Below the pieces are notes generated by a model. It saw only the letters and a program-made list of their open reading frames with translations. It had not been told where the DNA came from and ran no database searches. From the sequence record NC_028950.1: a DNA stretch of 64,000 bases; one strand, 5' to 3'. This document shows positions 1,271-63,317 of this stretch, piece after piece. Positions within the stretch are counted from its first letter, which is position 1; every line of letters starts with the position of its first letter. The position numbers and the translations under genes were made by a program.

Positions 1271-2836
1271 TTAATTCTTCGATTTAAAAACGCCATTGAC
1301 GGTACTGAACTGTACGGTCTTCATGGCACGATTGATGGTTCGGCCTTTGAGACATTCAGCGAATGCGTCGTAGGAGCGTGGCGTCAAGCCGTTAGCGAGA
1401 ATGTTGTCGCACGGCCGATAGTTGCCCGCGGTCGTCGGCGCAATGTACTGCACGATCTGTTCGAACGCACAGGGCGAATTACGCAGACGAGCCTTGGCAT
1501 CTTCCGTGATGTAGGTGAGGTCAGTGGTCACCGAAACACGCAAATGCCAGACCTTACGTTTGTTGAGCGGCTGAGTCGAATAGACGTTCAGATTCTCATC
1601 CATGCGAATCCAGCTCGGATCAGCCAGCAGTCGACCCATGTAAAGGGCGACGTTCACTGCCGATTGGCGAGGCTTGGTCACATACTGAGCTTCCGACGCC
1701 ATGAACTGCTTCATGCAGTCACTGAACTGGAAACCGTACGAATCCGCTTCGAGATCCGTCAGGTTCATGAGCAGGTTCGGATCCATCCCAGCTGCCACTT
1801 GTTCGTCAGTTGGCAACAACACGAGAGTCGTCACCATACGCATCGTCCTTTCAGGAACATTGCGAGGCATGAACTCATCGAACGTCGGGAAGTAACGACC
1901 CGGGAAATCACGCCATACCTGATTGATGTCGTTCATAGCTTCAAACGACTTCAGATGTGCCATCGACCAGCTACGTGATTGCTGATGGTCTTCCAAACGC
2001 TGGAAGCCTTCCTGATTGCGGAACTTCTTGTCCAGGATCTGATTGTGAACCGAGATCGGGTACATGAAGTGAATGTCCTTCGGCTTCTCGTAACGCAGTA
2101 CGTACGGAATTTCCACTTCCCATACATCGGTTTCGTCTTTACGCTGACCGAAGTCAGGTTCAGAACCGATGTCGAAGAAACCGAGACAACGCATCTGGGT
2201 ATCTTTGAATACCCCCAGCGTGTTCTTACCAGCCTGATCAGTCAACAGACCGTATCGGGGATTGACCCATTTCTGGAAGAACGTGTCAAAGTCCTCGCCA
2301 TAGCCCGCTACAGCCTCCTGGAGGCTCCAGAGTTCTTTCAGGATGACCATGTAGGACTCAGGCATCGCAAACGAATACTGAAGCGTATGAAGCCACGTAT
2401 CTTCGCGGTTCGGGATCTTCATGATCATGTAATCGTACCAGCGACGAGCATCCGTCTTGTTCTTGGCACGATAATGGATCGAGAACTTCATTTCCACCGA
2501 TGCATAAATCGGACGCATCTCGATTTCGAGGTCACGATTCAGAAAGAGTGGAATCTGTTCAGGCTGTTTGGTCACCATCGCCGGCAGCCAATCGTTGACG
2601 TAGTTCTCCGTAATTTCGATGAAGATCTTGTCAGTCGACGGCAGGCGAATGGTTTCGTATTTGTTGGAGATATAGCCATGAGGCTGAGCGACCGTATCCG
2701 CATAACCCGGATAGTTAATGTTCATGTTTGCGGGCAAACCGAGACGATCGATCAGAATTTCCTGGACCGTGGCTACAGCGATGGCACGACTCACCGACTG
2801 ATCGGATTCCAGGATAGGTCTTTGAATCTTGGGCAT
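1271..2836 (-). CDS. Conserved virion structural protein (phiKZ gp98-100 region)
   Basis: 521-aa ORF with phage codon bias, tightly packed with neighbours; function from synteny only. Confidence 0.7.
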   Translation of the reverse strand: MPKIQRPILESDQSVSRAIAVATVQEILIDRLGLPANMNINYPGYADTVAQPHGYISNKYETIRLPSTDKIFIEITENYVNDWLPAMVTKQPEQIPLFLNRDLEIEMRPIYASVEMKFSIHYRAKNKTDARRWYDYMIMKIPNREDTWLHTLQYSFAMPESYMVILKELWSLQEAVAGYGEDFDTFFQKWVNPRYGLLTDQAGKNTLGVFKDTQMRCLGFFDIGSEPDFGQRKDETDVWEVEIPYVLRYEKPKDIHFMYPISVHNQILDKKFRNQEGFQRLEDHQQSRSWSMAHLKSFEAMNDINQVWRDFPGRYFPTFDEFMPRNVPERTMRMVTTLVLLPTDEQVAAGMDPNLLMNLTDLEADSYGFQFSDCMKQFMASEAQYVTKPRQSAVNVALYMGRLLADPSWIRMDENLNVYSTQPLNKRKVWHLRVSVTTDLTYITEDAKARLRNSPCAFEQIVQYIAPTTAGNYRPCDNILANGLTPRSYDAFAECLKGRTINRAMKTVQFSTVNGVFKSKN

Positions 2837-3643: not shown

Positions 3644-4954
3644 TCAGTGTCCGTCCTTCTTCAGGTCAACGTGGTTACCGCTACGGTTGTTGAAAGCCAA
3701 CACGTATTGGGCGAGATTGATGAAGGAGTTCACGATCCCGTCCACCATGCCGTAATACATCAGGCCGGGCTGATCCATCGTCTTCTGGAAGAACTTCAGA
3801 TCGTACATCATGATGTCACGGTCGGATTTCTTCTCTTTGCTGGAGAAGAGTCCTGCACCGATCTTCTTGATCTTGGCTTCCATGCCCTTGATGAACGCTT
3901 CCTTGTCAACCTGATACTGCTTGACTTTATCCGCACAGGCGAGCAACTGCTTGTTCAGATACTGGATGTTCTCGATGAGCTTGTCGGGATTGGCGAAATC
4001 GCCTTCCAGTACAGCATACTTGTTCAGGTTGATGATGCCTTCGACCTTCGTCTTGCTGATCTTCAGACCATCCACCCAACGAAGATTCTGCTTCATCACG
4101 TCGTCGCTCTTCGCATCGTACTTGGGAGGAGGCGGCATCTGAACCGTGATGAAAGTGCTGTCGCCGAATTCTTCCGACGCATACACCTTAACATCGCCAT
4201 TCTTACCGCGAGCAGCAGCAAGGATCTTTCCGTCACGAGTTTCCTCGAACGGAACAGGCATGGAGTCGTCGGTCGGCTTGTCGCCCATCATGCTTTCTTT
4301 GGCCTTGTGGTTCATCTCGTGCTGGGCGCTAAACACCTTCAGCATTTCAGAACCGATACGAGCCAAAGTCGGACCATCCATGATGCCGTGGTTGGTCACG
4401 ATATGCTTAAGGATTTCAGGCTTGGACAGATCGCACTTGGTGTAGAAGCCGTTGGAGCCAATGGGATACGGACCATCCTTCTTCTGTTCGTCGGTCTTTT
4501 TCTCGTTGGCAGCTTTGACTTCTTCAGCCTTGTTCTTCAGATCGGCTGTCTTTTCTTCATGATCCTTGTTGCGCGTGAAGATACGCTTGATCAGACCCCC
4601 GACCCACAGGAACGCTTTCTTGATCGCATTGATAATGGACATGAAAACATTCTTGATGCCTTCGCCGAAACCTTCAAGAGCAGCGTGACTGATGTCATGT
4701 TGCTTGAACGATTGCAGATCGGGAATCACTTTGTTCGAATTTCCGCCGATACGACCCAGACGCAGGAAGCATTCAACGGAGTGCTGGACGAGTTTATACG
4801 CCGTCTCATCGAGTCCCTTATCGCCGTCGGTCATCAGTTCCTGGGTATACGTGAGACTTTCCAGAGTCTGAATGGCCGTTTCGACTTTCTCGTTATCGTG
4901 AGCATAAGCCTGGAGGTCCAGATCCAAGCTATCGTTATAGGTGAGTGAGCTCAT
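3644..4954 (-). CDS. Internal head (inner body/ejection) protein, phiKZ gp93-97-like family
   Basis: 436 aa; prohead-protease-type S/A/G-x-E site (ALEGF) followed by amphipathic helix IKNVFMSIINAIKKAFLWVGGLIKRIF; paralog of 5061..6377. Confidence 0.75.
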   Translation of the reverse strand: MSSLTYNDSLDLDLQAYAHDNEKVETAIQTLESLTYTQELMTDGDKGLDETAYKLVQHSVECFLRLGRIGGNSNKVIPDLQSFKQHDISHAALEGFGEGIKNVFMSIINAIKKAFLWVGGLIKRIFTRNKDHEEKTADLKNKAEEVKAANEKKTDEQKKDGPYPIGSNGFYTKCDLSKPEILKHIVTNHGIMDGPTLARIGSEMLKVFSAQHEMNHKAKESMMGDKPTDDSMPVPFEETRDGKILAAARGKNGDVKVYASEEFGDSTFITVQMPPPPKYDAKSDDVMKQNLRWVDGLKISKTKVEGIINLNKYAVLEGDFANPDKLIENIQYLNKQLLACADKVKQYQVDKEAFIKGMEAKIKKIGAGLFSSKEKKSDRDIMMYDLKFFQKTMDQPGLMYYGMVDGIVNSFINLAQYVLAFNNRSGNHVDLKKDGH

Positions 4955-15685: not shown

Positions 15686-16996
15686 TTAAGCGTTACGGAA
15701 CTTGTTTGCGTAGTAGAACAGCTTGTTGGACGCCATGTCTTCGAGCTGTTGCTGGAATTCGATCTGTTTGCGTTTGTTGACGCCCGACGGAATCAGGTAG
15801 TCATAGACCAGGCCCACGAGCTGGGTATGGTCCTTGAAGTTTTCGTTGGTCTTGTCGATGATGTCGATATCTTCGCGGATGCGAGCCGAATCTTCTTTCG
15901 TCAGACCGGGTTCCTTCAGTTCGTTCACGAGATCGTTGCGGATACGCGTGAAACGACGACCAGCTTTGTCGTACCAGTCGTGATGGGCATCTGCCAGCAG
16001 GAGACCAGCGAGCAACACGAACGTCGTGTATGCGCCATAGACCTGACCGACTGCGATTTCGAAGATGCCGAGCGCCAGCACACAGACCTTCACGAATTCC
16101 ATGAAGAAGTAGCCGACCCAGCCACGACGATAGATCGTGCCCTTGTACATCTTGTCCAGACCTGTCACGAGATCCTTACCGGCGCCATGACGCGTTGCGA
16201 ACTGATCCGACAGAGCTTCGAAGCTGTTGATGTCGTAGCCTTCCACGCCCGACTGGCTGCGGTTGTTGCGTGCCAGGTTCGAGATGATGACCGTGTAGAT
16301 CGTCGTGTTGTTCTTGTTGCCGAGATCCTGGGCATCGATGTTCGTCAAGGACAACATGTCGCCAGCTTCCTTGATGATGATCTCACGCTTGCCGTGATCG
16401 GTCGTACCGTCCAGTTCACGCACCATCGTGATGAGGATCTGGTTGGTCGTACGGAAGCGGATCAGGTGTTCGAAGAACGACCAGACGTGACCGACTTCAT
16501 GCAGGATGATCGCCGAGAGTTCAGGACTCGTGTATTCACGGCCGTCGAAGAGCTTGTAGAGCAGACCCTTGTTGCCGTAGATCATTGCAGCATTCAGGTA
16601 CATCTTGATCGGCGGCAGATCTGCCAGGTAACCGTCCACCCAGCCTGCGTTCAGATCCATGAACGCACGCACTTCCTTGTTCTGGCTCTTGCGGATGTCG
16701 GCGAGCGAGCGCTTGGAGAGCGTCGTGTCCTTCCAGCCGTAACCTTCAAGCAGCGGGCTGTTCTTGTCCAGATGCGGGGGTTCCGTCATCATGGGCATGT
16801 CCGAGACGCTGACCTCGAAGTTGATGTTCGTGTTTTCTTTGATGCATTTTGCGACTGCGATCTCGAACTCGGTGCGAGTATTACCGTCGCTCTTGGTACG
16901 GTACTCGTCGATGATCGCCGTCATCTCGCGGTGAAAGCGATCGTTCTGGAACGAGATGCTCTCCGGCGAGTAGATGGGATTGATGGTGGTAAACAT
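15686..16996 (-). CDS. Virion protein with zinc-metallopeptidase motif and transmembrane hairpin (phiKZ gp84-like)
   Basis: IILHEVGH (HEXXH), downstream FEALSDQFA (ExxxD third-ligand type motif), two hydrophobic helices near the C-terminus; start taken as ATG 16996. Confidence 0.7.
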   Translation of the reverse strand: MFTTINPIYSPESISFQNDRFHREMTAIIDEYRTKSDGNTRTEFEIAVAKCIKENTNINFEVSVSDMPMMTEPPHLDKNSPLLEGYGWKDTTLSKRSLADIRKSQNKEVRAFMDLNAGWVDGYLADLPPIKMYLNAAMIYGNKGLLYKLFDGREYTSPELSAIILHEVGHVWSFFEHLIRFRTTNQILITMVRELDGTTDHGKREIIIKEAGDMLSLTNIDAQDLGNKNNTTIYTVIISNLARNNRSQSGVEGYDINSFEALSDQFATRHGAGKDLVTGLDKMYKGTIYRRGWVGYFFMEFVKVCVLALGIFEIAVGQVYGAYTTFVLLAGLLLADAHHDWYDKAGRRFTRIRNDLVNELKEPGLTKEDSARIREDIDIIDKTNENFKDHTQLVGLVYDYLIPSGVNKRKQIEFQQQLEDMASNKLFYYANKFRNA

Positions 16997-31253: not shown

Positions 31254-32189
31254 ATGGCAACGGATCAACAAGCTGGTACGCAAGACGGCGCAGCAGTCGA
31301 CACGACCAAGCAAGACGCAACGCAAACGCCGCCGGCAACGGGCGCGAACGACACGGCCGCTCCGGCAGCCGATGCGACGGCAAAGGACCAGGCTGCTCCG
31401 GCCGCAGGCACGCAAGATACGAGCGCTACCGATGCAGCTGCAGCCGCTGCTGCTGCTCAAGAAGCTGCCGACAAGCAAGCAGCAGCTGACGCTCAGGCTG
31501 CCGCCGACGCACAAGCTGCACAAGCTGCCGCAGATGCCGCAGCAGCAGCAGCAAAGGCACAGCCCGTGACCGCGCAGGTTCGCAAGACGATCCCCGCTCC
31601 GGCACCGCAACAAGCGGCTGCAAAGCCGACGGCAACGACTCCCGCCGCCGCTGTCGTCACGAAGCAAGTCGCTGCAGCAGCTACGGTCACCGACACGGCC
31701 GCCAAAGCTCCGGCAAGCGATCGTGATCTTCCCGAAGTCGTCGCAGCAATGAAGGTCGCGAAGCCGCAGACGCAATCGGCTCTGTACCAGGTCATCCAGT
31801 ACGCAATCGACATGCATCCGGGCAAGCGCGTGGAACTGTCGACGATCGAACTGACTCAGGTCAACCTGCGCACGAACCTGTTCACGATCCTGTCGGCAGA
31901 AGACGCGAACTTCAAGGTCGTCTACCAGGCACTGCTCGCAATCGTCAAGGCACACAAGCAGAACTGCTTCGCGATCACGGCACGCAATCGTGGCCTGAAC
32001 TCGGTCAGCTTGGCTGCACTCGACAACAAGGGCATGCGCTTCCTGACGAAGATCGTCGACCTGCTCGTGCTGACGGCCGGCACCAACAACCTCGAACAAG
32101 TCAAGCAGCACTACGACTTCTCGAAGCTGGCCGAATGGTGCCCGAACGTGCGCATCCAGCAGAACCTGACGTCGTACTACTCGGCGTAA
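31254..32189 (+). CDS. Conserved hypothetical protein (phiKZ gp81 position) with Ala/Gln/Asp/Thr-rich N-terminal half
   Basis: 311 aa; GGAG RBS; high-expression codons; globular C-terminal domain. Confidence 0.75.
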   Translation: MATDQQAGTQDGAAVDTTKQDATQTPPATGANDTAAPAADATAKDQAAPAAGTQDTSATDAAAAAAAAQEAADKQAAADAQAAADAQAAQAAADAAAAAAKAQPVTAQVRKTIPAPAPQQAAAKPTATTPAAAVVTKQVAAAATVTDTAAKAPASDRDLPEVVAAMKVAKPQTQSALYQVIQYAIDMHPGKRVELSTIELTQVNLRTNLFTILSAEDANFKVVYQALLAIVKAHKQNCFAITARNRGLNSVSLAALDNKGMRFLTKIVDLLVLTAGTNNLEQVKQHYDFSKLAEWCPNVRIQQNLTSYYSA

Positions 32190-32204: not shown

Positions 32205-32249
32205 CATAGCTCCTACTCCTACCCGCAAGGGTAGGAGTAGGGCTTTATG
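32205..32249. terminator. Bidirectional long hairpin (GCAA loop) bounded by CATA...TATG
   Basis: gctcctactcctaccc-gcaa-gggtaggagtagggc between convergent genes. Confidence 0.8.
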
Positions 32250-33131: not shown

Positions 33132-33536
33132 TCATTCAGGAATGTAGGAAAGAACTACGTACGCAATACCCGGTTCGAGTCCGATCTTGTCACCTAGGAT
33201 CGGAACCAGGCTGATGCCGGCCAAAGTCGACAGATAAAGCGCTGTCAACCCAGCTTTGTCGTCTTCGAAAGTGCATTCACAAGTGAAAGCGCCATCGTCC
33301 TCGACAATTTTGCCAGCCTTAATGCACTGGCCAAAATCCGTTTTGCCGGGATTCTTCTCCCGGATGTACTGCTGGAGAGCATATGCCAAACGAGCCGGTC
33401 TGGAGCCCTCGTTGAAGGCCGCAAAGTGCTTCCTCCACTCATCTACGGTGGTCTCATACTCCGGCGGCAGAAAAATGTCCACGACCTGGTTAGTACGAGA
33501 CCGGATAGTCTTTTGAACTAACCGGTCAAGACTCAT
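33132..33536 (-). CDS. Hypothetical protein (134 aa)
   Basis: GAGGAG RBS; 1 nt from the upstream stop. Confidence 0.7.
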   Translation of the reverse strand: MSLDRLVQKTIRSRTNQVVDIFLPPEYETTVDEWRKHFAAFNEGSRPARLAYALQQYIREKNPGKTDFGQCIKAGKIVEDDGAFTCECTFEDDKAGLTALYLSTLAGISLVPILGDKIGLEPGIAYVVLSYIPE

Positions 33537-33537
33537 A

Positions 33538-33813
33538 TTACTCCTCGTTCAGATGCTTAATTACCTTGTCAAAGACGTCCTGCCAGGTAGCGAACGGGCC
33601 ATCGAGAAATCCGATCTCCAGTTCATCTTCCAGTTCAGACATGATGTCCATGTGATCCAGCGAATCCAGATCCCCGCTCTGGAAAGGCAACGCCAGGAAC
33701 TCACGGAACTCCGTACTGTTCTCGACCGCGGTCTTGCGAACCGTTTTCGTGTCGTACGACGAAACTACTTGAACGAGCACCCGTCGTGCTCTTTGTGCTT
33801 TGGCCTCAGCCAT
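33538..33813 (-). CDS. Acyl carrier protein (ACP) homolog
   Basis: 91 aa from ATG 33813 (AGGGG RBS); GDLDSLDHMDIMSELEDELEI matches the phosphopantetheine site DSL-x-E-x-M-x-LE; acidic, predicted four-helix pattern. Confidence 0.75.
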   Translation of the reverse strand: MAEAKAQRARRVLVQVVSSYDTKTVRKTAVENSTEFREFLALPFQSGDLDSLDHMDIMSELEDELEIGFLDGPFATWQDVFDKVIKHLNEE

Positions 33814-33871
33814 TTTAAAAACCCCTGCATTTGTTATTGCTGTTACATGGTTTCGGTCGAAAACCAAATAA

Positions 33872-34069
33872 TCAGTCCCGCTTGATGTTGTACAGGTCTT
33901 TAAGCTCGGGATGGCTGACGCGAAGCTGAATCATGTCCCAATTGTTCGGTATTTCCTTGAATTCAAAGAACATATTAAACGCCTGCCCTTTCTCGTCTAC
34001 TACCTGACAGAGAATGTGCTTGTCCTGAGGCAGTTTCTTCATTTGTTCGATTATGTCTGCGGGAGTCAT
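33872..34069 (-). CDS. Hypothetical protein (65 aa)
   Basis: GAGG RBS; ATG start. Confidence 0.6.
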   Translation of the reverse strand: MTPADIIEQMKKLPQDKHILCQVVDEKGQAFNMFFEFKEIPNNWDMIQLRVSHPELKDLYNIKRD

Positions 34070-34094
34070 AAGACCTCAAAAAAATAAGTAGGCA

Positions 34095-34140
34095 GCAAAA
34101 AGGGCGGTACAGAGTGGCCGAAGCCACCCCATACCGTGCC
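34095..34140 (-). terminator. Intrinsic terminator (UUCG loop, U-tract)
   Basis: Minus strand GGCACGGTATGGGGTGGC-TTCG-GCCACTCTGTACCGCC-CTTTTT. Confidence 0.8.
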
Positions 34141-34617
34141 TAAGATGAACTGAACTTACATCCCAAGGTCGTCGAGTTAACAACGACTATGGGCTATAAG
34201 CTTTGCAGCGTTTCCCAACGGATACTTCACTTATAACTGTCCCGAAAAGACCCCTTACAATCGATGCGGGCTTAATACACACGAAGGCCGAACGACGTCC
34301 CCGCAAGCGCGAACGCGCGCGCCAGCGATTTACGTCAGGCATCACTAAGTCCTTAAAGGGAAACTCATATCGGCGGCACTAAGAGGCGGCCATGAGTTGT
34401 GATCTTCGCGCAGCTTAGAGCAGTAGTATCGAGACTCTGCCTTCACCACATACGACGTGTGTATTTCGCGGGCCTTTCACCCGAGTGAGGAACTAAGTGG
34501 CAACCATGCGGCCAATTCCAACACCTCTGCCTCGAACAGATCTTCAGAAGCCATCTTGTTAAAGAACGAGACGGCCGACCAGTCTCTCACGAGATTAGGT
34601 CAGCCGCCAGATCACGC
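34141..34617 (-). ncRNA. Candidate large structured non-coding RNA of unknown class
   Basis: No ORF of 60 aa or more; multiple stems with GNRA loops; 10-bp long-range complement (34274-34283 with 34456-34465); lies between a stop codon and a terminator. Confidence 0.55.
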
Positions 34618-35952
34618 TTACGGTTGAAGCGAGTCGGTTTGGTCGACAGCAGCTGCGCCGTCAGCATCGGCCTTCACGTCGGTCGCCGCCGGCGTTTGGA
34701 CTTCAGCTTGAACAGCAGCATCGACGACCGGAGCCGCATCTGCGGCAACTGCCGGGGTTTCAGCGGTCGGGGCAGCGTCGGCGGGAGCAGCGACTTGTTC
34801 AGCCGTTGCGTCCACTGCCGGCGTTTCCACGGCCGGAACTTCTGCCTGCGCTTGTGCAGCGTCGGTTTCCACCGGCGCAGCCGTTTGCGCTGCGTCAGCA
34901 GCTTGTTCCACCGGAGCAGCGTCGACAGGGGCGCCAGCCAGTGCTGCAGCCGTTGCCGGATCTGCATTCACTTCGGGCGTTTGTGCCAGAGCTTCGGGCG
35001 AGTGATCGACTTCTTGCGAAGCGTCACCAGCCGGAGCGGCTGCTTGTTCGACAGCGGGAGCTTCAGCTTGAGCAGCGTCTGCTGCCGGTGCATCCACTTG
35101 TGCTGCGACTTCCGGTGCTGCTTGCTCGCCAGCGGCGGGGTCGGCTGCAGGAGCGGCTTGTTCAGCAACGCCTGCGTCGGCTGCGCCAGCCGGTTGAGCT
35201 TGATCTGCAACAGCAGCGACGGTCGTGTCAGCTGCAGCTTGGGCCGGAACTTCGGCTTGGGCATCTGCTGCGTTCACGTCGCCTTGCGGAGCTGCGTCAG
35301 CCGGAGCCGGTTCTTGACCTGCGGCCGGGTCCACTTCTGCTGCTGCATCTGCAGCCGGAGCTTCCGGTTGAGCGGCTTGGTCAGCTGCTTGTTCCGGTTG
35401 AGCGTCGGTGGCTGCGGGAGCTTGCGGAACTTCCGGGGTATCCGGTTGTGCCGAAGCGTCTGCGGGCTGTTCCACTGCCGGTGCAGCTTGTTCAGCCGTA
35501 CCTGCATCCGTGCCCGCTGCCGGATCTTGTTCGACGGCCGGAGCATCGCCCGTCGGTTGTGCTTCTGCCGCGCCTGCGTCGCCTGCCGGTGCTGCATCGG
35601 CGGGTTGCTGCACGTCCTGGCCGGCTGCGGCTGCTGCCGAATCCGTACCAGCATCTTGCGTTTGGTCACCAGCGGCGATCTGTGCATCCAGACCAGCTGC
35701 TGCTGCACCTGCGGCCGCGGCGGCTGCCGTGCCGTTGTCGCCCAGACCGAGCGCTTCGTTCGTTGCGTCGCCCAGCGGCGCGTCAGTCAGTGCTGCCACA
35801 CCGGCGTCGACTTGAGTGTTCGAATGCTCGTCTTTCTTCTTGTGGAAAAGGCCGACGATGCGTTCGACTACGTGTTCGGGCAGTGCTGCGAGGGCTTCGA
35901 TAGCCAGCACCTCGGCTTTGAGTTCGTCGAGAACTTTGTGGATGATGCTCAC
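34618..35952 (-). CDS. Acidic Ala/Pro/Gln/Asp-rich intrinsically disordered protein with a short N-terminal helical domain
   Basis: 444 aa; GTG start with AAGGA RBS; repeated APAVEQ/EQAAPA/QAEVPA; no W, Y or C. Confidence 0.75.
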   Translation of the reverse strand: MSIIHKVLDELKAEVLAIEALAALPEHVVERIVGLFHKKKDEHSNTQVDAGVAALTDAPLGDATNEALGLGDNGTAAAAAAGAAAAGLDAQIAAGDQTQDAGTDSAAAAAGQDVQQPADAAPAGDAGAAEAQPTGDAPAVEQDPAAGTDAGTAEQAAPAVEQPADASAQPDTPEVPQAPAATDAQPEQAADQAAQPEAPAADAAAEVDPAAGQEPAPADAAPQGDVNAADAQAEVPAQAAADTTVAAVADQAQPAGAADAGVAEQAAPAADPAAGEQAAPEVAAQVDAPAADAAQAEAPAVEQAAAPAGDASQEVDHSPEALAQTPEVNADPATAAALAGAPVDAAPVEQAADAAQTAAPVETDAAQAQAEVPAVETPAVDATAEQVAAPADAAPTAETPAVAADAAPVVDAAVQAEVQTPAATDVKADADGAAAVDQTDSLQP

Positions 35953-35987
35953 GATTTTTCCTTGAAAGGAGTGTTTTAAAAAGACTG

Positions 35988-36020
35988 CTCAACCAGCAAA
36001 AACGTTGTTACTGGCTCATA
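35988..36020 (-). promoter_or_regulatory. Late-promoter-like TATG followed by a 5' leader hairpin
   Basis: Minus strand TATG at 36020-36017, then AGCCAGTAA-CAACGTTT-TTGCTGGTT stem. Confidence 0.4.
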
Positions 36021-36035
36021 CAATTTCGGCCGATT

Positions 36036-36398
36036 TCAGTGCCAAATGATGGTCACGAAAGGTCCTGCAACGGCGAAGGCGAATATCAGTTTGCACACAA
36101 TGTGTATCAGCTGATCACCCATCGCACTGATGATCTTGTTGACCCGCAACATGTCGGTCGCCCAATGCCAGGCGAACTCACAGAAACCGATCGTGAAGGC
36201 TGCTTTCGGATTGAACAACCAGATCACGCTACCTGCAGCTGCACCCTGAATCAGGGCATGCATCGTCAGGCCATACCACCACGGGAAGCCAGGCACCAAC
36301 CTGTTCTTGATGTCGGACAGGAATTGTCCTTGACCAGGAAAGTCGAAGAATGCGTGAACTGCCAGCAGGAGGCCGAGAACTGCAAGGAACGTTGTCAT
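36036..36398 (-). CDS. DUF3307-like membrane protein (His-rich putative metal site)
   Basis: HAFFDFPGQ, HALIQG, HWATD, DQLIH motifs with four hydrophobic helices. Confidence 0.75.
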   Translation of the reverse strand: MTTFLAVLGLLLAVHAFFDFPGQGQFLSDIKNRLVPGFPWWYGLTMHALIQGAAAGSVIWLFNPKAAFTIGFCEFAWHWATDMLRVNKIISAMGDQLIHIVCKLIFAFAVAGPFVTIIWH

Positions 36399-36661
36399 TA
36401 TGGTTATCCTTGAAGGGGTGGCCCGAGATCTTTATCGTTGGTTAGAACGCTTTGTTGAGCCGCTTACCGTAGGAGGTTGGAGTATGCGCTCGAACTCGAT
36501 CTCGAAGCCGAAAAAAAATAGCAGGAAGGCATCTTCCTGCAAAGGGGGGTTGCCCAAAACGAAGTCAGTTAAACGATGGGTCTAGGGCTGCCGCATGGTG
36601 CGTGCTGCAATCGTTTTACGTCGGTCGTTCTGGGCAAATCATAGCTGATGTAATTATTTTT

Positions 36662-62237: not shown

Positions 62238-63317
62238 ATGCTCAGCATCTTCAACGACCTTCAGCCCAGGATGAAAGGTATCATCAGCTTTCCTGAATGG
62301 ACATTCATTCGGGATGGTCTGATGATGAACCTGGACCACACAAACAAATACTACCGCAGTGGTGCTTATGCGGTAGGTTCCGATCATGAACTGGTGAAAC
62401 TGCTGTTCGGTTTGACCACCAGTACGGATGAAGAACTCTCGACCTATTACAAACGAGTTGATGCAAAAGCATTGACCGTTGCTCAACAATTGGGATTCAC
62501 GACTTCTATCAGTAAGGGACACATGTTCAACAATGTGTTCTTCTCAGGTAAGAGTCGAGAAGTCATCATCGTTCATAACGAAGACTTCGATCCCCAGCAA
62601 GTTACGGAGAACTGGCGGGATGCTCGTCCGATTCAAATCCTGCGTCATGGCTTTGACTTCATCGATTGTTTTCCTATGCAAGGGCAGCTGGAAAGCTCTG
62701 GAGTCAGCTGCTTCGCCATCAATCTGTCCATGCTCGGCGTGCAGTATCGAGCGTATCGTCAATGGCAGAAAACGTACGTAACGGAAGAGACGGGTCGTAA
62801 CTCGGTCTATCATTTCCTGTTTGCATATCCACTGAACAATATGATTTACGATGCGATGGACCATGCGGTGTTTAACCGTCTAGTGCGTCTGAATCAGAAT
62901 CTGCCTACGAGCGACAATCAATATCGTCATCCGTTTCATGTGACGAACTTCGTGGGTCGCGTAGATCGAATCCTGGGGAAAGTACTCGAAACGCTTCGAA
63001 ACAATCCTCTCGACTTTTACAACATCTGCGCTACGATCCCGCTGGTCAATCAGGGCAGTCTGCTGGATCTCTTGAAGCTTCCGGATATCTACGAATCTCG
63101 GCAAATCAACTGGGCTATTTACATGGCTCGGATCGATATGCTCCTGTTCCTTCTGAGCTTCGAGAACAATCTGAAGATGATGAACCAAAGTGAACTGAGC
63201 AAGATCAAGTACTCACTGAAGTTGTACCTGAAAGACGGTACGATTCAGTCTGCTGTACCGCGCGATCTGTTCGGCAAACAAAAGATCGTCATCGAACAAC
63301 TGGTTGAAAAGATGTAA
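62238..63317 (+). CDS. Conserved hypothetical protein (phiKZ gp52/53 region)
   Basis: 359 aa; divergent from chmA; TATG at about 62192; ends at a bidirectional hairpin. Confidence 0.7.
   Translation: MLSIFNDLQPRMKGIISFPEWTFIRDGLMMNLDHTNKYYRSGAYAVGSDHELVKLLFGLTTSTDEELSTYYKRVDAKALTVAQQLGFTTSISKGHMFNNVFFSGKSREVIIVHNEDFDPQQVTENWRDARPIQILRHGFDFIDCFPMQGQLESSGVSCFAINLSMLGVQYRAYRQWQKTYVTEETGRNSVYHFLFAYPLNNMIYDAMDHAVFNRLVRLNQNLPTSDNQYRHPFHVTNFVGRVDRILGKVLETLRNNPLDFYNICATIPLVNQGSLLDLLKLPDIYESRQINWAIYMARIDMLLFLLSFENNLKMMNQSELSKIKYSLKLYLKDGTIQSAVPRDLFGKQKIVIEQLVEKM

Follow-up and report, generated by a model that had tools for sequence, protein, structure and literature searches.

A large structured noncoding RNA and its changing gene neighbors in Ralstonia jumbo phage RSL2 and related phages

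Whether a protein gene and a folded RNA that lie side by side in a phage genome form one functional unit is the question raised by part of a 64,000-nucleotide (nt) stretch of record NC_028950.1, referred to here as the window. The window is identical (100%) to Ralstonia jumbo phage RSL2, a phiKZ-related member of the genus Chiangmaivirus, and all positions refer to it unless another sequence is named. The original prediction, made from the sequence alone, described positions 34095 to 36020 as a self-contained unit consisting of a TATG motif, a leader hairpin, a gene for a 444-aa acidic disordered protein (IDP), a large structured RNA, and a U-tract terminator, and proposed that protein and RNA are coexpressed and may act as one ribonucleoprotein (RNP) or condensate module. 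All of these parts were found in place on the minus strand, within a codirectional block of genes running from open reading frame (ORF) 204 to ORF194. The RNA is an undescribed structured noncoding RNA of a group of giant Ralstonia and Burkholderia phages. The proposed unit did not survive comparison, as relatives were identified that lack the IDP gene yet keep the RNA, which in them follows other genes. The comparison set comprised eight isolate genomes (including RSL2, RSF1, FLC6, FLC8, SURPRISE13, and RsoM3USA) and metagenomic relatives that were reached via homologs of a neighboring gene for an acyl carrier protein (ACP)-like product.

A folded RNA on the gene-sense strand

The stretch between the stop codon of the IDP gene and ORF197 has a minimum free energy z score of -4.4 and shows strong covariation. 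Using RNAalifold on the eight isolates, 161 to 175 base pairs were predicted, 24 to 27 of them with compensatory double changes, compared with 2 to 7 in slid controls. For the central domain (model R1, 16 rows), 33 of 56 pairs had changed on both sides, against 12.8 ± 2.2 in shuffled alignments; none of 500 shuffles reached 33, slid controls gave 7 to 14, and 92% of cells were paired. Across the full-length RNA, 49 of 144 pairs had changed on both sides among 13 sequences, versus 10 to 20 in slid controls. The sense alignment folded to -250.8 kcal/mol and the opposite strand to -203.3 kcal/mol, and 96% of cells were canonical on the sense strand compared with 83% when mirrored. As 181 G-U cells on the sense strand become A-C mismatches on the other, the RNA was assigned to the gene-sense strand. 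These figures bear on the alternative that the region functions as DNA, for example, as a replication origin, packaging site, or recombination site, which a large, conserved, hairpin-dense stretch with no conserved ORF might suggest. This is extremely unlikely, since the pairing is strand specific, with conserved G-U pairs that would mismatch on the other strand, and since the stretch is single copy, ends in a classical terminator, and lies inside a codirectional gene block.

The RNA stretch shares 74 to 91% identity among the eight isolates (RSL2 versus RSF1, 79%; RSL2 versus SURPRISE13, 74%), whereas the adjacent ORF differs at 48 to 51% of its synonymous sites in the same two comparisons and the neighboring ORF194 retains just 52% protein identity. 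The RNA is thus far better conserved than nearby synonymous sites and is under selection. Indels within it are 1 to 2 nt long, and its sole micro-ORF loses the start codon in RsoM3USA, where the codon is AGG; both observations argue against coding. That micro-ORF (MASEDLFEAEV) was rejected as a gene on account of the AGG start and its variable length, and between RSL2 and RSF1 it carries 3 synonymous and 7 nonsynonymous changes. As an aside, it has typical phage codons and is kept in seven of the eight isolates, and it may be a coding relic recruited into the RNA. Compensatory changes above controls with no conserved ORF are what is generally expected of a structured noncoding RNA, and both were found here.

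In RSL2 the RNA is approximately 480 nt long (34569-34095, minus strand), and in relatives it ranges from approximately 320 to 740 nt; its elements are listed in Table 1. Between the IDP stop codon and the RNA lies hairpin H1, which did not qualify as terminator-like in the terminator scan and whose place is taken by a different hairpin in the metagenomic lineage L023; it may be a spacer, a processing element, or a weak attenuator. The motif CUGA(A/U)GA with its short hairpin is present in all lineages, and the stems here are fully compensated (CUG/CAG, CCGG/CCGG, and GUGG/CCAC). In hairpin H3, sequence and length vary between lineages but pairing is kept, and the stem of the hairpin after it, with the loop UGA(A/G)A(A/G)G, covaries as CGGG/CCCG, CAGG/CCUG, GGGG/CCCC, or UGGG/CCCA. 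The helix closing the central domain (34465-34457 with 34282-34274) is 98.7% paired, and compensatory changes affect 6 of its 10 pairs. In the 3' domain, 7 of the 16 pairs of the long hairpin are compensated; this domain consists of one hairpin in L037 and is enlarged in L023, L025, L028, and L031. The core common to all lineages comprises the CUGAAGA hairpin, H3, the UGAAAGG-loop hairpin, and the central domain.

To establish the distribution and novelty of the RNA, model R1 and conserved sequence patterns were used as queries. The RNA is single copy in the RSL2 genome (model R1, E = 2.6e-52), and the model recovered it in L019, L021/L022, L023/L024, L025, L026 (5' truncated), L027, L028, L029/L030, L031, and L037. 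No match to the model was obtained in RP31, RTH11, phiKZ, PhiPA3, or Kodama, nor in T5, RaK2, or phage G. Conserved RNA patterns matched RSF1 alone in IMG/VR and gave a single chance match, in an unrelated small contig (L010), in JGI metagenomes; two patterns searched against prokaryote genomes gave none. At gathering thresholds, Rfam 15 returned no match in the window or in six relatives, and at E values up to 10 only noise far under gathering scores was seen in both. ARAGORN identified no tRNA or transfer-messenger RNA (tmRNA) in the 64-kb window. Published small RNAs exist for phiKZ and 201phi2-1, and among the papers searched none describes such an RNA in Chiangmaivirus or other phiKZ-like phages.

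The closest likeness in kind is to GOLLD, ROOL, and OLE, large "ornate" noncoding RNAs of bacteria and phages whose function is unknown (PMC12286853). Like these, the RSL2 RNA spans several hundred nucleotides, contains many covarying helices, including long-range ones, and has no known partner or function; like GOLLD and ROOL, it is carried by phages. It differs in that it matches none of their Rfam models, is predicted to form the 3' terminus of an mRNA instead of standing alone, and is confined to one clade of nucleus-type jumbo phages. GOLLD and ROOL are often associated with tRNAs in phages, in contrast to the window, where neither tRNA nor tmRNA was detected.

Table 1. Positions of the features at the RSL2 locus and in relatives (window coordinates unless a contig is named)
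Feature	Position	Strand	Description or basis
DUF3307 membrane-protein gene	stop codon at 36036	minus	Upstream of TATG
TATGAGC element	36014..36020 (TATG, 36020-36017)	minus	Candidate phiKZ-type late promoter core, start site at G of TATG; invariance and PMC7598289
5' leader hairpin	35991..36016	minus	8-9 bp, immediately after TATG; RNAfold on 8 leaders
Small leader hairpin	35959..35970	minus	3' arm holds IDP Shine-Dalgarno AAGGA; predicted in 8/8 leaders; weak (4-5 bp)
IDP gene	34618..35952	minus	444 aa, GTG start; conserved frame, dN/dS
ORF198 (GenBank)	35824-35979	plus	51 aa, antisense to IDP N terminus; probably spurious
Stretch with no conserved ORF	34617-34095	minus	~520 nt, between IDP stop codon and ORF197
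Hairpin H1	34570..34608	minus	GUGA loop, then conserved CGUUCUUUAAC; just past IDP stop; five compensated pairs
RNA 5' segment	34526..34569	minus	Conserved CGUUCUUUAACAAG, CUGAAGA, 4-bp hairpin with 7-nt loop; compensated stems
CUGA(A/U)GA motif	34541-34547; L019 1864-1893; L037 4535-4562	minus (window)	
Micro-ORF MASEDLFEAEV	34482-34556	minus	Rejected as a gene
Variable hairpin H3	34484..34525	minus	8/9 pairs changed on both sides
Hairpin with conserved 7-nt loop	34469..34483	minus	UGA(A/G)A(A/G)G (UGAAAGG in RSL2); covarying stem
Central multibranch domain	34274..34465	minus	Model R1; closed by 10-bp long-range helix
Second TATGAG	34364-34371	minus	Inside central domain (CGAUAUGAG)
3' domain	34150..34273	minus	Invariant GCCCGCAUCGAUUGU..GGGGUCUUUUCGGGA segment (~34271-34242) and long hairpin 34200-34155
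Intrinsic terminator	34095..34140 (stem 34136-34105)	minus	14-bp G+C-rich stem, UUCG loop, then CCCUUUUUGCUG; 5/16 pairs compensated
ORF197	33872..34069	minus	65 aa; starts ~30 nt after U-tract; leads ACP-like operon
ORF196	33538-33813	minus	ACP-like, 91 aa; 54-87% identity in all relatives; always downstream of RNA
ORF193	31254-32189	plus	Adjoins virion RNA polymerase subunit gene
Zn-ribbon-like ORF	L021 2727-2924; L023 ~3720-3921; L019 1533-1853; RSF1 L007 ~1757-1979		Small, Cys rich
103-aa inserted gene	L021 3882-4193; L022 4086-4397		Replaces CGUUCUUUAACAA segment
Two Kelch-like genes	L019 2586-4450		305 and 300 aa, tandem

Gene order around the RNA in relatives

In the eight isolates the IDP gene and the RNA are always adjacent and co-oriented, as they are in several metagenomic relatives. 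Together with the absence of a terminator-like site between them, and with the few basic residues of the protein being held in its N-terminal 45 aa, this arrangement is what speaks for the proposal of a coexpressed protein and RNA that function jointly as a single RNP or condensate module. However, the adjacency in the isolates lies inside a fully syntenic block and is therefore not independent evidence. The original prediction had itself named an RNA placed next to unrelated genes in relatives as grounds for refuting it, and among the metagenomic relatives the gene-RNA linkage was indeed found to be interrupted or lost. In L021/L022, the order is Zn-ribbon ORF, IDP gene, an extra gene of 103 aa, and RNA, with the stop codon of the extra gene inside the CUGAAGA motif of the RNA. 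In L023/L024, which come from two independent samples, the RNA begins 3 nt after the stop codon of the Zn-ribbon ORF and no IDP N-terminal domain was found within ±5 kb. In L019, a 231-kb contig, the Zn-ribbon ORF is followed by the RNA and two Kelch-like genes, with no IDP gene within ±5 kb. In L037, an IMG/VR genome of 218.7 kb that is 97% complete, the RNA stands between the DUF3307 gene and the ACP-like gene; no IDP N-terminal domain was detected across the whole of this genome, whereas the RSF1 control matched at 8e-21. A contig carrying the ACP homolog P0019 has the gene spacing of L037, as judged from gene positions alone. Thus, the RNA is kept without the IDP gene in three lineages that are more distant from RSL2, and the two are neighbors rather than an obligate pair.

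The protein itself points the same way. With a net charge of approximately -71 and 7 Lys plus Arg residues, the RSL2 IDP is a polyanion and, judged by composition, is unlikely to bind RNA; net charge ranges from -42 to -80 across the eight isolates, with no more than nine Lys plus Arg residues in any protein. Its length ranges from 223 to 450 aa when metagenomic relatives are included, in contrast to the constant core of the RNA. Taken with the IDP-less lineages and the intervening gene of L021/L022, these properties make an RNP or condensate module scarcely probable. The natural IDP-less genomes provide ready controls for that idea, and the comparison directs experiments to the RNA alone.

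What is gained or lost appears to be the segment upstream of the RNA. The TATGAGCCAG element, the leader, and the IDP gene occur together in 13 genomes and are jointly absent from L019, L023/L024, and L037, with the TATG element missing from every IDP-less lineage. The three therefore behave like an insertable cassette, which in one subclade is placed between the RNA and the gene that precedes it (Zn-ribbon or DUF3307). A promoter-like element joined to an acidic IDP gene as a mobile cassette would be a separate object of interest. The relation of this segment to its upstream neighbor varies. Many relatives have a small Cys-rich, Zn-ribbon-like ORF between the DUF3307 gene and the IDP gene or the RNA, and in RSF1, SURPRISE13, and L021 the TATG element overlaps its last codons. 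The ORF has been lost from RSL2, the FLC phages, and RsoM3USA, which keep its final ~20 nt as the TATGAGCCAGUAA element; in RSL2 the TATG element has thus been retained despite deletion of the ORF. The CGUUCUUUAACAA segment is unique in the RSL2 genome.

Transcription and possible roles of the RNA

The TATG motif that opens the region corresponds to T(-3)ATG(+1), the core of phiKZ late promoters (PMC7598289). Extended to TATGAGC, it is invariant in all eight isolates while its flanks diverge, and it is followed by a conserved region; in phiKZ late promoters, the region downstream of the core is reported to be important (PMC7598289). The distance from the motif to the start codon of the IDP gene is approximately 65 nt, and the extended motif around it occurs once in the RSL2 genome. 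The hairpin that follows was called as a 5' stem in the original prediction, and its stem is kept in seven of the eight isolates, with a shorter loop in RSF1; SURPRISE13 forms a different hairpin in the same place. This conservation, beyond which nothing was found to mark TATG as a promoter in RSL2, suggests, together with the joint presence or absence of the parts, that the TATG element, the leader, and the IDP gene constitute a putative promoter-plus-gene cassette. A second, likewise invariant TATGAG was noted inside the central domain of the RNA (Table 1), and genome-wide this hexamer is approximately 3.5-fold underrepresented, with 28 copies versus approximately 100 expected. The only sigma-70-like site found is at chance level and is positioned after the terminator.

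At the other end, the terminator stem is directly followed by CCCUUUUUGC, and this is the sole terminator-like site on the minus strand within 33500-36500, so that none intervenes between TATG and the end of the RNA. The U-tract and the GCUG(C/U)C that follows it are conserved even where the stem differs, as in L023, which has a different stem with the same U-tract; L019 has a terminal hairpin with no U-tract. In every lineage the RNA starts 0 to 50 nt past an upstream stop codon. The distance is 3 nt in L023; in L019 and L037 the RNA begins right at the codon, and in L021/L022 the two overlap. This leaves no space for a separate promoter outside coding sequence, and an RNA that abuts the upstream stop codon with no terminator in between fits cotranscription as a 3' untranslated region (UTR)-like segment. 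The coexpression proposed originally is thereby made plausible for RSL2, separately from the single module to which it had been tied and which the IDP-less genomes contradict. Metatranscriptome contigs from related Chiangmaivirus-like phages, compared over window positions 33800-36300, are in keeping with this. In four root metatranscriptome runs from one study (X8, X9, X11, and X12), contigs continue from the IDP gene past its stop codon and into the RNA, and one contig of 2.2 kb extends from the upstream genes through to approximately position 34140. The contigs are strandless and may include phage DNA, and they are consistent with cotranscription rather than proof of it. Chiangmaivirus-like phages are thus represented in RNA libraries prepared from the roots of plants.

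Small RNAs derived from 3' UTRs are familiar in proteobacteria, CpxQ and SroC being examples. The RSL2 RNA resembles these in lying directly past a stop codon, in sharing the intrinsic terminator of the mRNA, and in having upstream of it a U/A-rich single-stranded stretch that could be an RNase E site. It differs from them in being 5 to 10 times longer and far more structured, and no seed-like conserved single strand or target was identified for it. Its position fits a 3' UTR-derived RNA, the 5' end of which would arise by processing. We consider it probable that this structured RNA is autonomous: it would form the 3' end of the upstream mRNA, might be cleaved free, and would act in trans. Transcribed in the gene-sense direction along with whichever gene precedes it, it would occupy the 3' terminus of that mRNA and end at its own strong intrinsic terminator. 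It would then either stay attached as a 3' UTR or be released by cleavage within the single-stranded U/A-rich stretch after H1, by a route like that of proteobacterial 3' UTR-derived RNAs. Acting in trans, it might serve as a protein-binding scaffold or decoy, or form an RNA-only particle. The IDP cassette of RSL2 probably contributes a further promoter, from which transcription would continue into the RNA.

Several points weigh against this interpretation. Only T(-3)ATG(+1) is common to phiKZ late promoters, a motif too short to specify a promoter (PMC7598289), and RSL2 intergenic DNA shows no enrichment of TATG, a 4-mer that is uninformative alone. RSL2 and RSF1 are rifampicin sensitive (PMC7598289), which sets RSL2 apart from phiKZ, so that host RNA polymerase may transcribe some RSL2 genes. 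The strandless contigs, as noted, could include phage DNA. H1 with its U-rich stretch could be a weak terminator, in which case the RNA would require a promoter of its own. Finally, the distance of approximately 30 nt from the terminator to the next start codon, seen in all lineages, is just as compatible with a cis-regulatory leader.

Such a leader or attenuator is the main rival explanation: the RNA would sense a ligand, a protein, or the state of the polymerase and set read-through into ORF197, the ACP-like gene, ORF195, and ORF194. The ACP-like operon is found downstream of the RNA and co-oriented with it in all lineages; in FLC6 and FLC8, which have no ORF197, the RNA is followed by the ACP-like gene. 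The short distance from terminator to start codon leaves no room for a promoter, so that downstream expression seems to need read-through, and the conservation of the U-tract and GCUG(C/U)C despite differing stems would also be accounted for. However, at 320 to 740 nt the RNA is far beyond known riboswitches or leaders, and its 14-bp G+C-rich stem with a UUCG loop resembles a constitutive terminator. No conserved alternative pairing for the 5' arm of the terminator, as an antiterminator would require, was seen in alignments that were inspected by eye and not exhaustively. In L019, moreover, the terminal hairpin lacks a U-tract, and three genes (two Kelch-like and one of 117 aa) intervene between the RNA and the ACP-like gene. 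On this evidence a cis-regulatory leader was judged unlikely.

The RNA could instead be catalytic, for example, with a self-cleaving ribozyme at its 5' border that releases it from the upstream mRNA, or could be a degenerate intron. CUGA(A/U)GA with a short hairpin is part of a hammerhead core and is universal here, the RNA invariably starts where an ORF ends, and L019 and L037 have GAAAC after the hairpin, which resembles the hammerhead core. A hammerhead requires GAAA at this point, though, and other sequences stand there in L023, L031, and the RSL2 clade; nor could the RNA be drawn as a junction of three stems with a UH cleavage site. No Rfam hammerhead model matched, and at E values up to 10 the only ribozyme or intron match was to group-II-D1D4-5 (E = 9.2, in L019). 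The hammerhead and k-turn readings of CUGAUGA were rejected as not conserved. A group I or group II intron was likewise rejected, as the upstream ORF has a conserved stop codon, the RNA is not flanked by the halves of a split ORF, and the gene downstream is not the same in all genomes. A catalytic RNA of this kind is very unlikely.

Large structured RNAs with strong covariation are rare and have repeatedly proved to be ribozymes, riboswitches, or unusual assemblies. A bolder version of the trans-acting interpretation sees in it an autonomous RNA of nucleus-forming jumbo phages that works as a ribozyme or as a particle of RNA alone or of RNA and protein (compare ROOL and GOLLD), is released from the 3' end of the mRNA, and is needed for infection, for example, by capturing a host factor. 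This is offered as a tentative possibility that we doubt; were it true, no large structured RNA would have been given a defined role in a phiKZ-like phage before this one. As a single-copy element of cultivable phages used in biocontrol of plant pathogens (RSL2, RSF1, FLC6, and SURPRISE13), the RNA can be deleted, mapped, and purified.

The acidic disordered protein and other features of the window

The IDP gene is real. Its frame is intact through many in-frame indels in the eight isolates and five metagenomic relatives, with a ratio of nonsynonymous to synonymous substitution rates (dN/dS) of 0.20 to 0.38. The protein has a conserved N-terminal helical domain of approximately 45 aa with a heptad-like hydrophobic pattern, a long tail of Ala, Asp, Pro, Gln, and Glu, and a conserved C-terminal DQTDSLQP. 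In RSL2, 35% of its residues are Ala and 78 are Asp or Glu; across the eight isolates, proteins of 251 to 450 aa contain 31 to 38% Ala. The ESM Atlas model has a predicted local distance difference test score (pLDDT) of 0.36 and a predicted template modeling score (pTM) of 0.11. Low-complexity composition, no stable predicted fold, and a frame under selection together place it among disordered acidic proteins.

No match to the protein was found in Pfam or PHROG, a word-based search with residues 1 to 90 returned no relatives, and phmmer with the N-terminal domain against 1.8 billion representative proteins gave only four long repeat proteins, which were judged spurious. Look-alikes in the ESM Atlas were uninformative, and no tandem repeats were found in the gene at the DNA level. 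The FLC6 ortholog, gp212, is listed without a homolog (PMC8066314).

Highly acidic phage proteins such as T7 Ocr mimic nucleic acid. The IDP shares the extreme negative charge of Ocr, but mimics of the Ocr type are folded, in contrast to the predicted disorder of the IDP, for which no homology was found.

The gene is absent from the RSL2 GenBank record, and its ortholog is annotated in the seven related isolates. In its place, the record carries ORF198 on the opposite strand. Open antisense frames over the IDP gene result from its GCN-rich codons, and no other credible gene was found inside the region, in agreement with the original prediction. The RSL2 annotation is corrected accordingly, with the missing 444-aa gene supplied and ORF198 regarded as probably spurious.

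Among the neighboring genes, ORF196 contains the sequence DSLD, a candidate for the phosphopantetheine attachment motif of ACPs. In L019, the tandem genes between the RNA and the ACP-like operon encode Kelch-like beta-propellers. A second acidic disordered segment is present nearby in ORF193, the product of which has an acidic, low-complexity N terminus of approximately 110 aa rich in Ala, Gln, Thr, and Asp, followed by a folded domain (phrog_18957).

The ORF204-ORF194 block ends at a palindromic hairpin between the convergent ORF193 and ORF194. This is one of three genome sites with perfect palindromic hairpins of the form CCUACUCCUACCC..GGGUAGGAGUAGG (genome positions 16771-16800, 119493-119524, and 192144-192173, the last being window positions 32212-32241). 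From the convergent arrangement, these hairpins and the perfect palindromic hairpins of another sequence (CAUAAUCCACUCUCCC..) at two genome sites, 62744-62779 and 108988-109023, may be bidirectional terminators, though they have no U-tracts.

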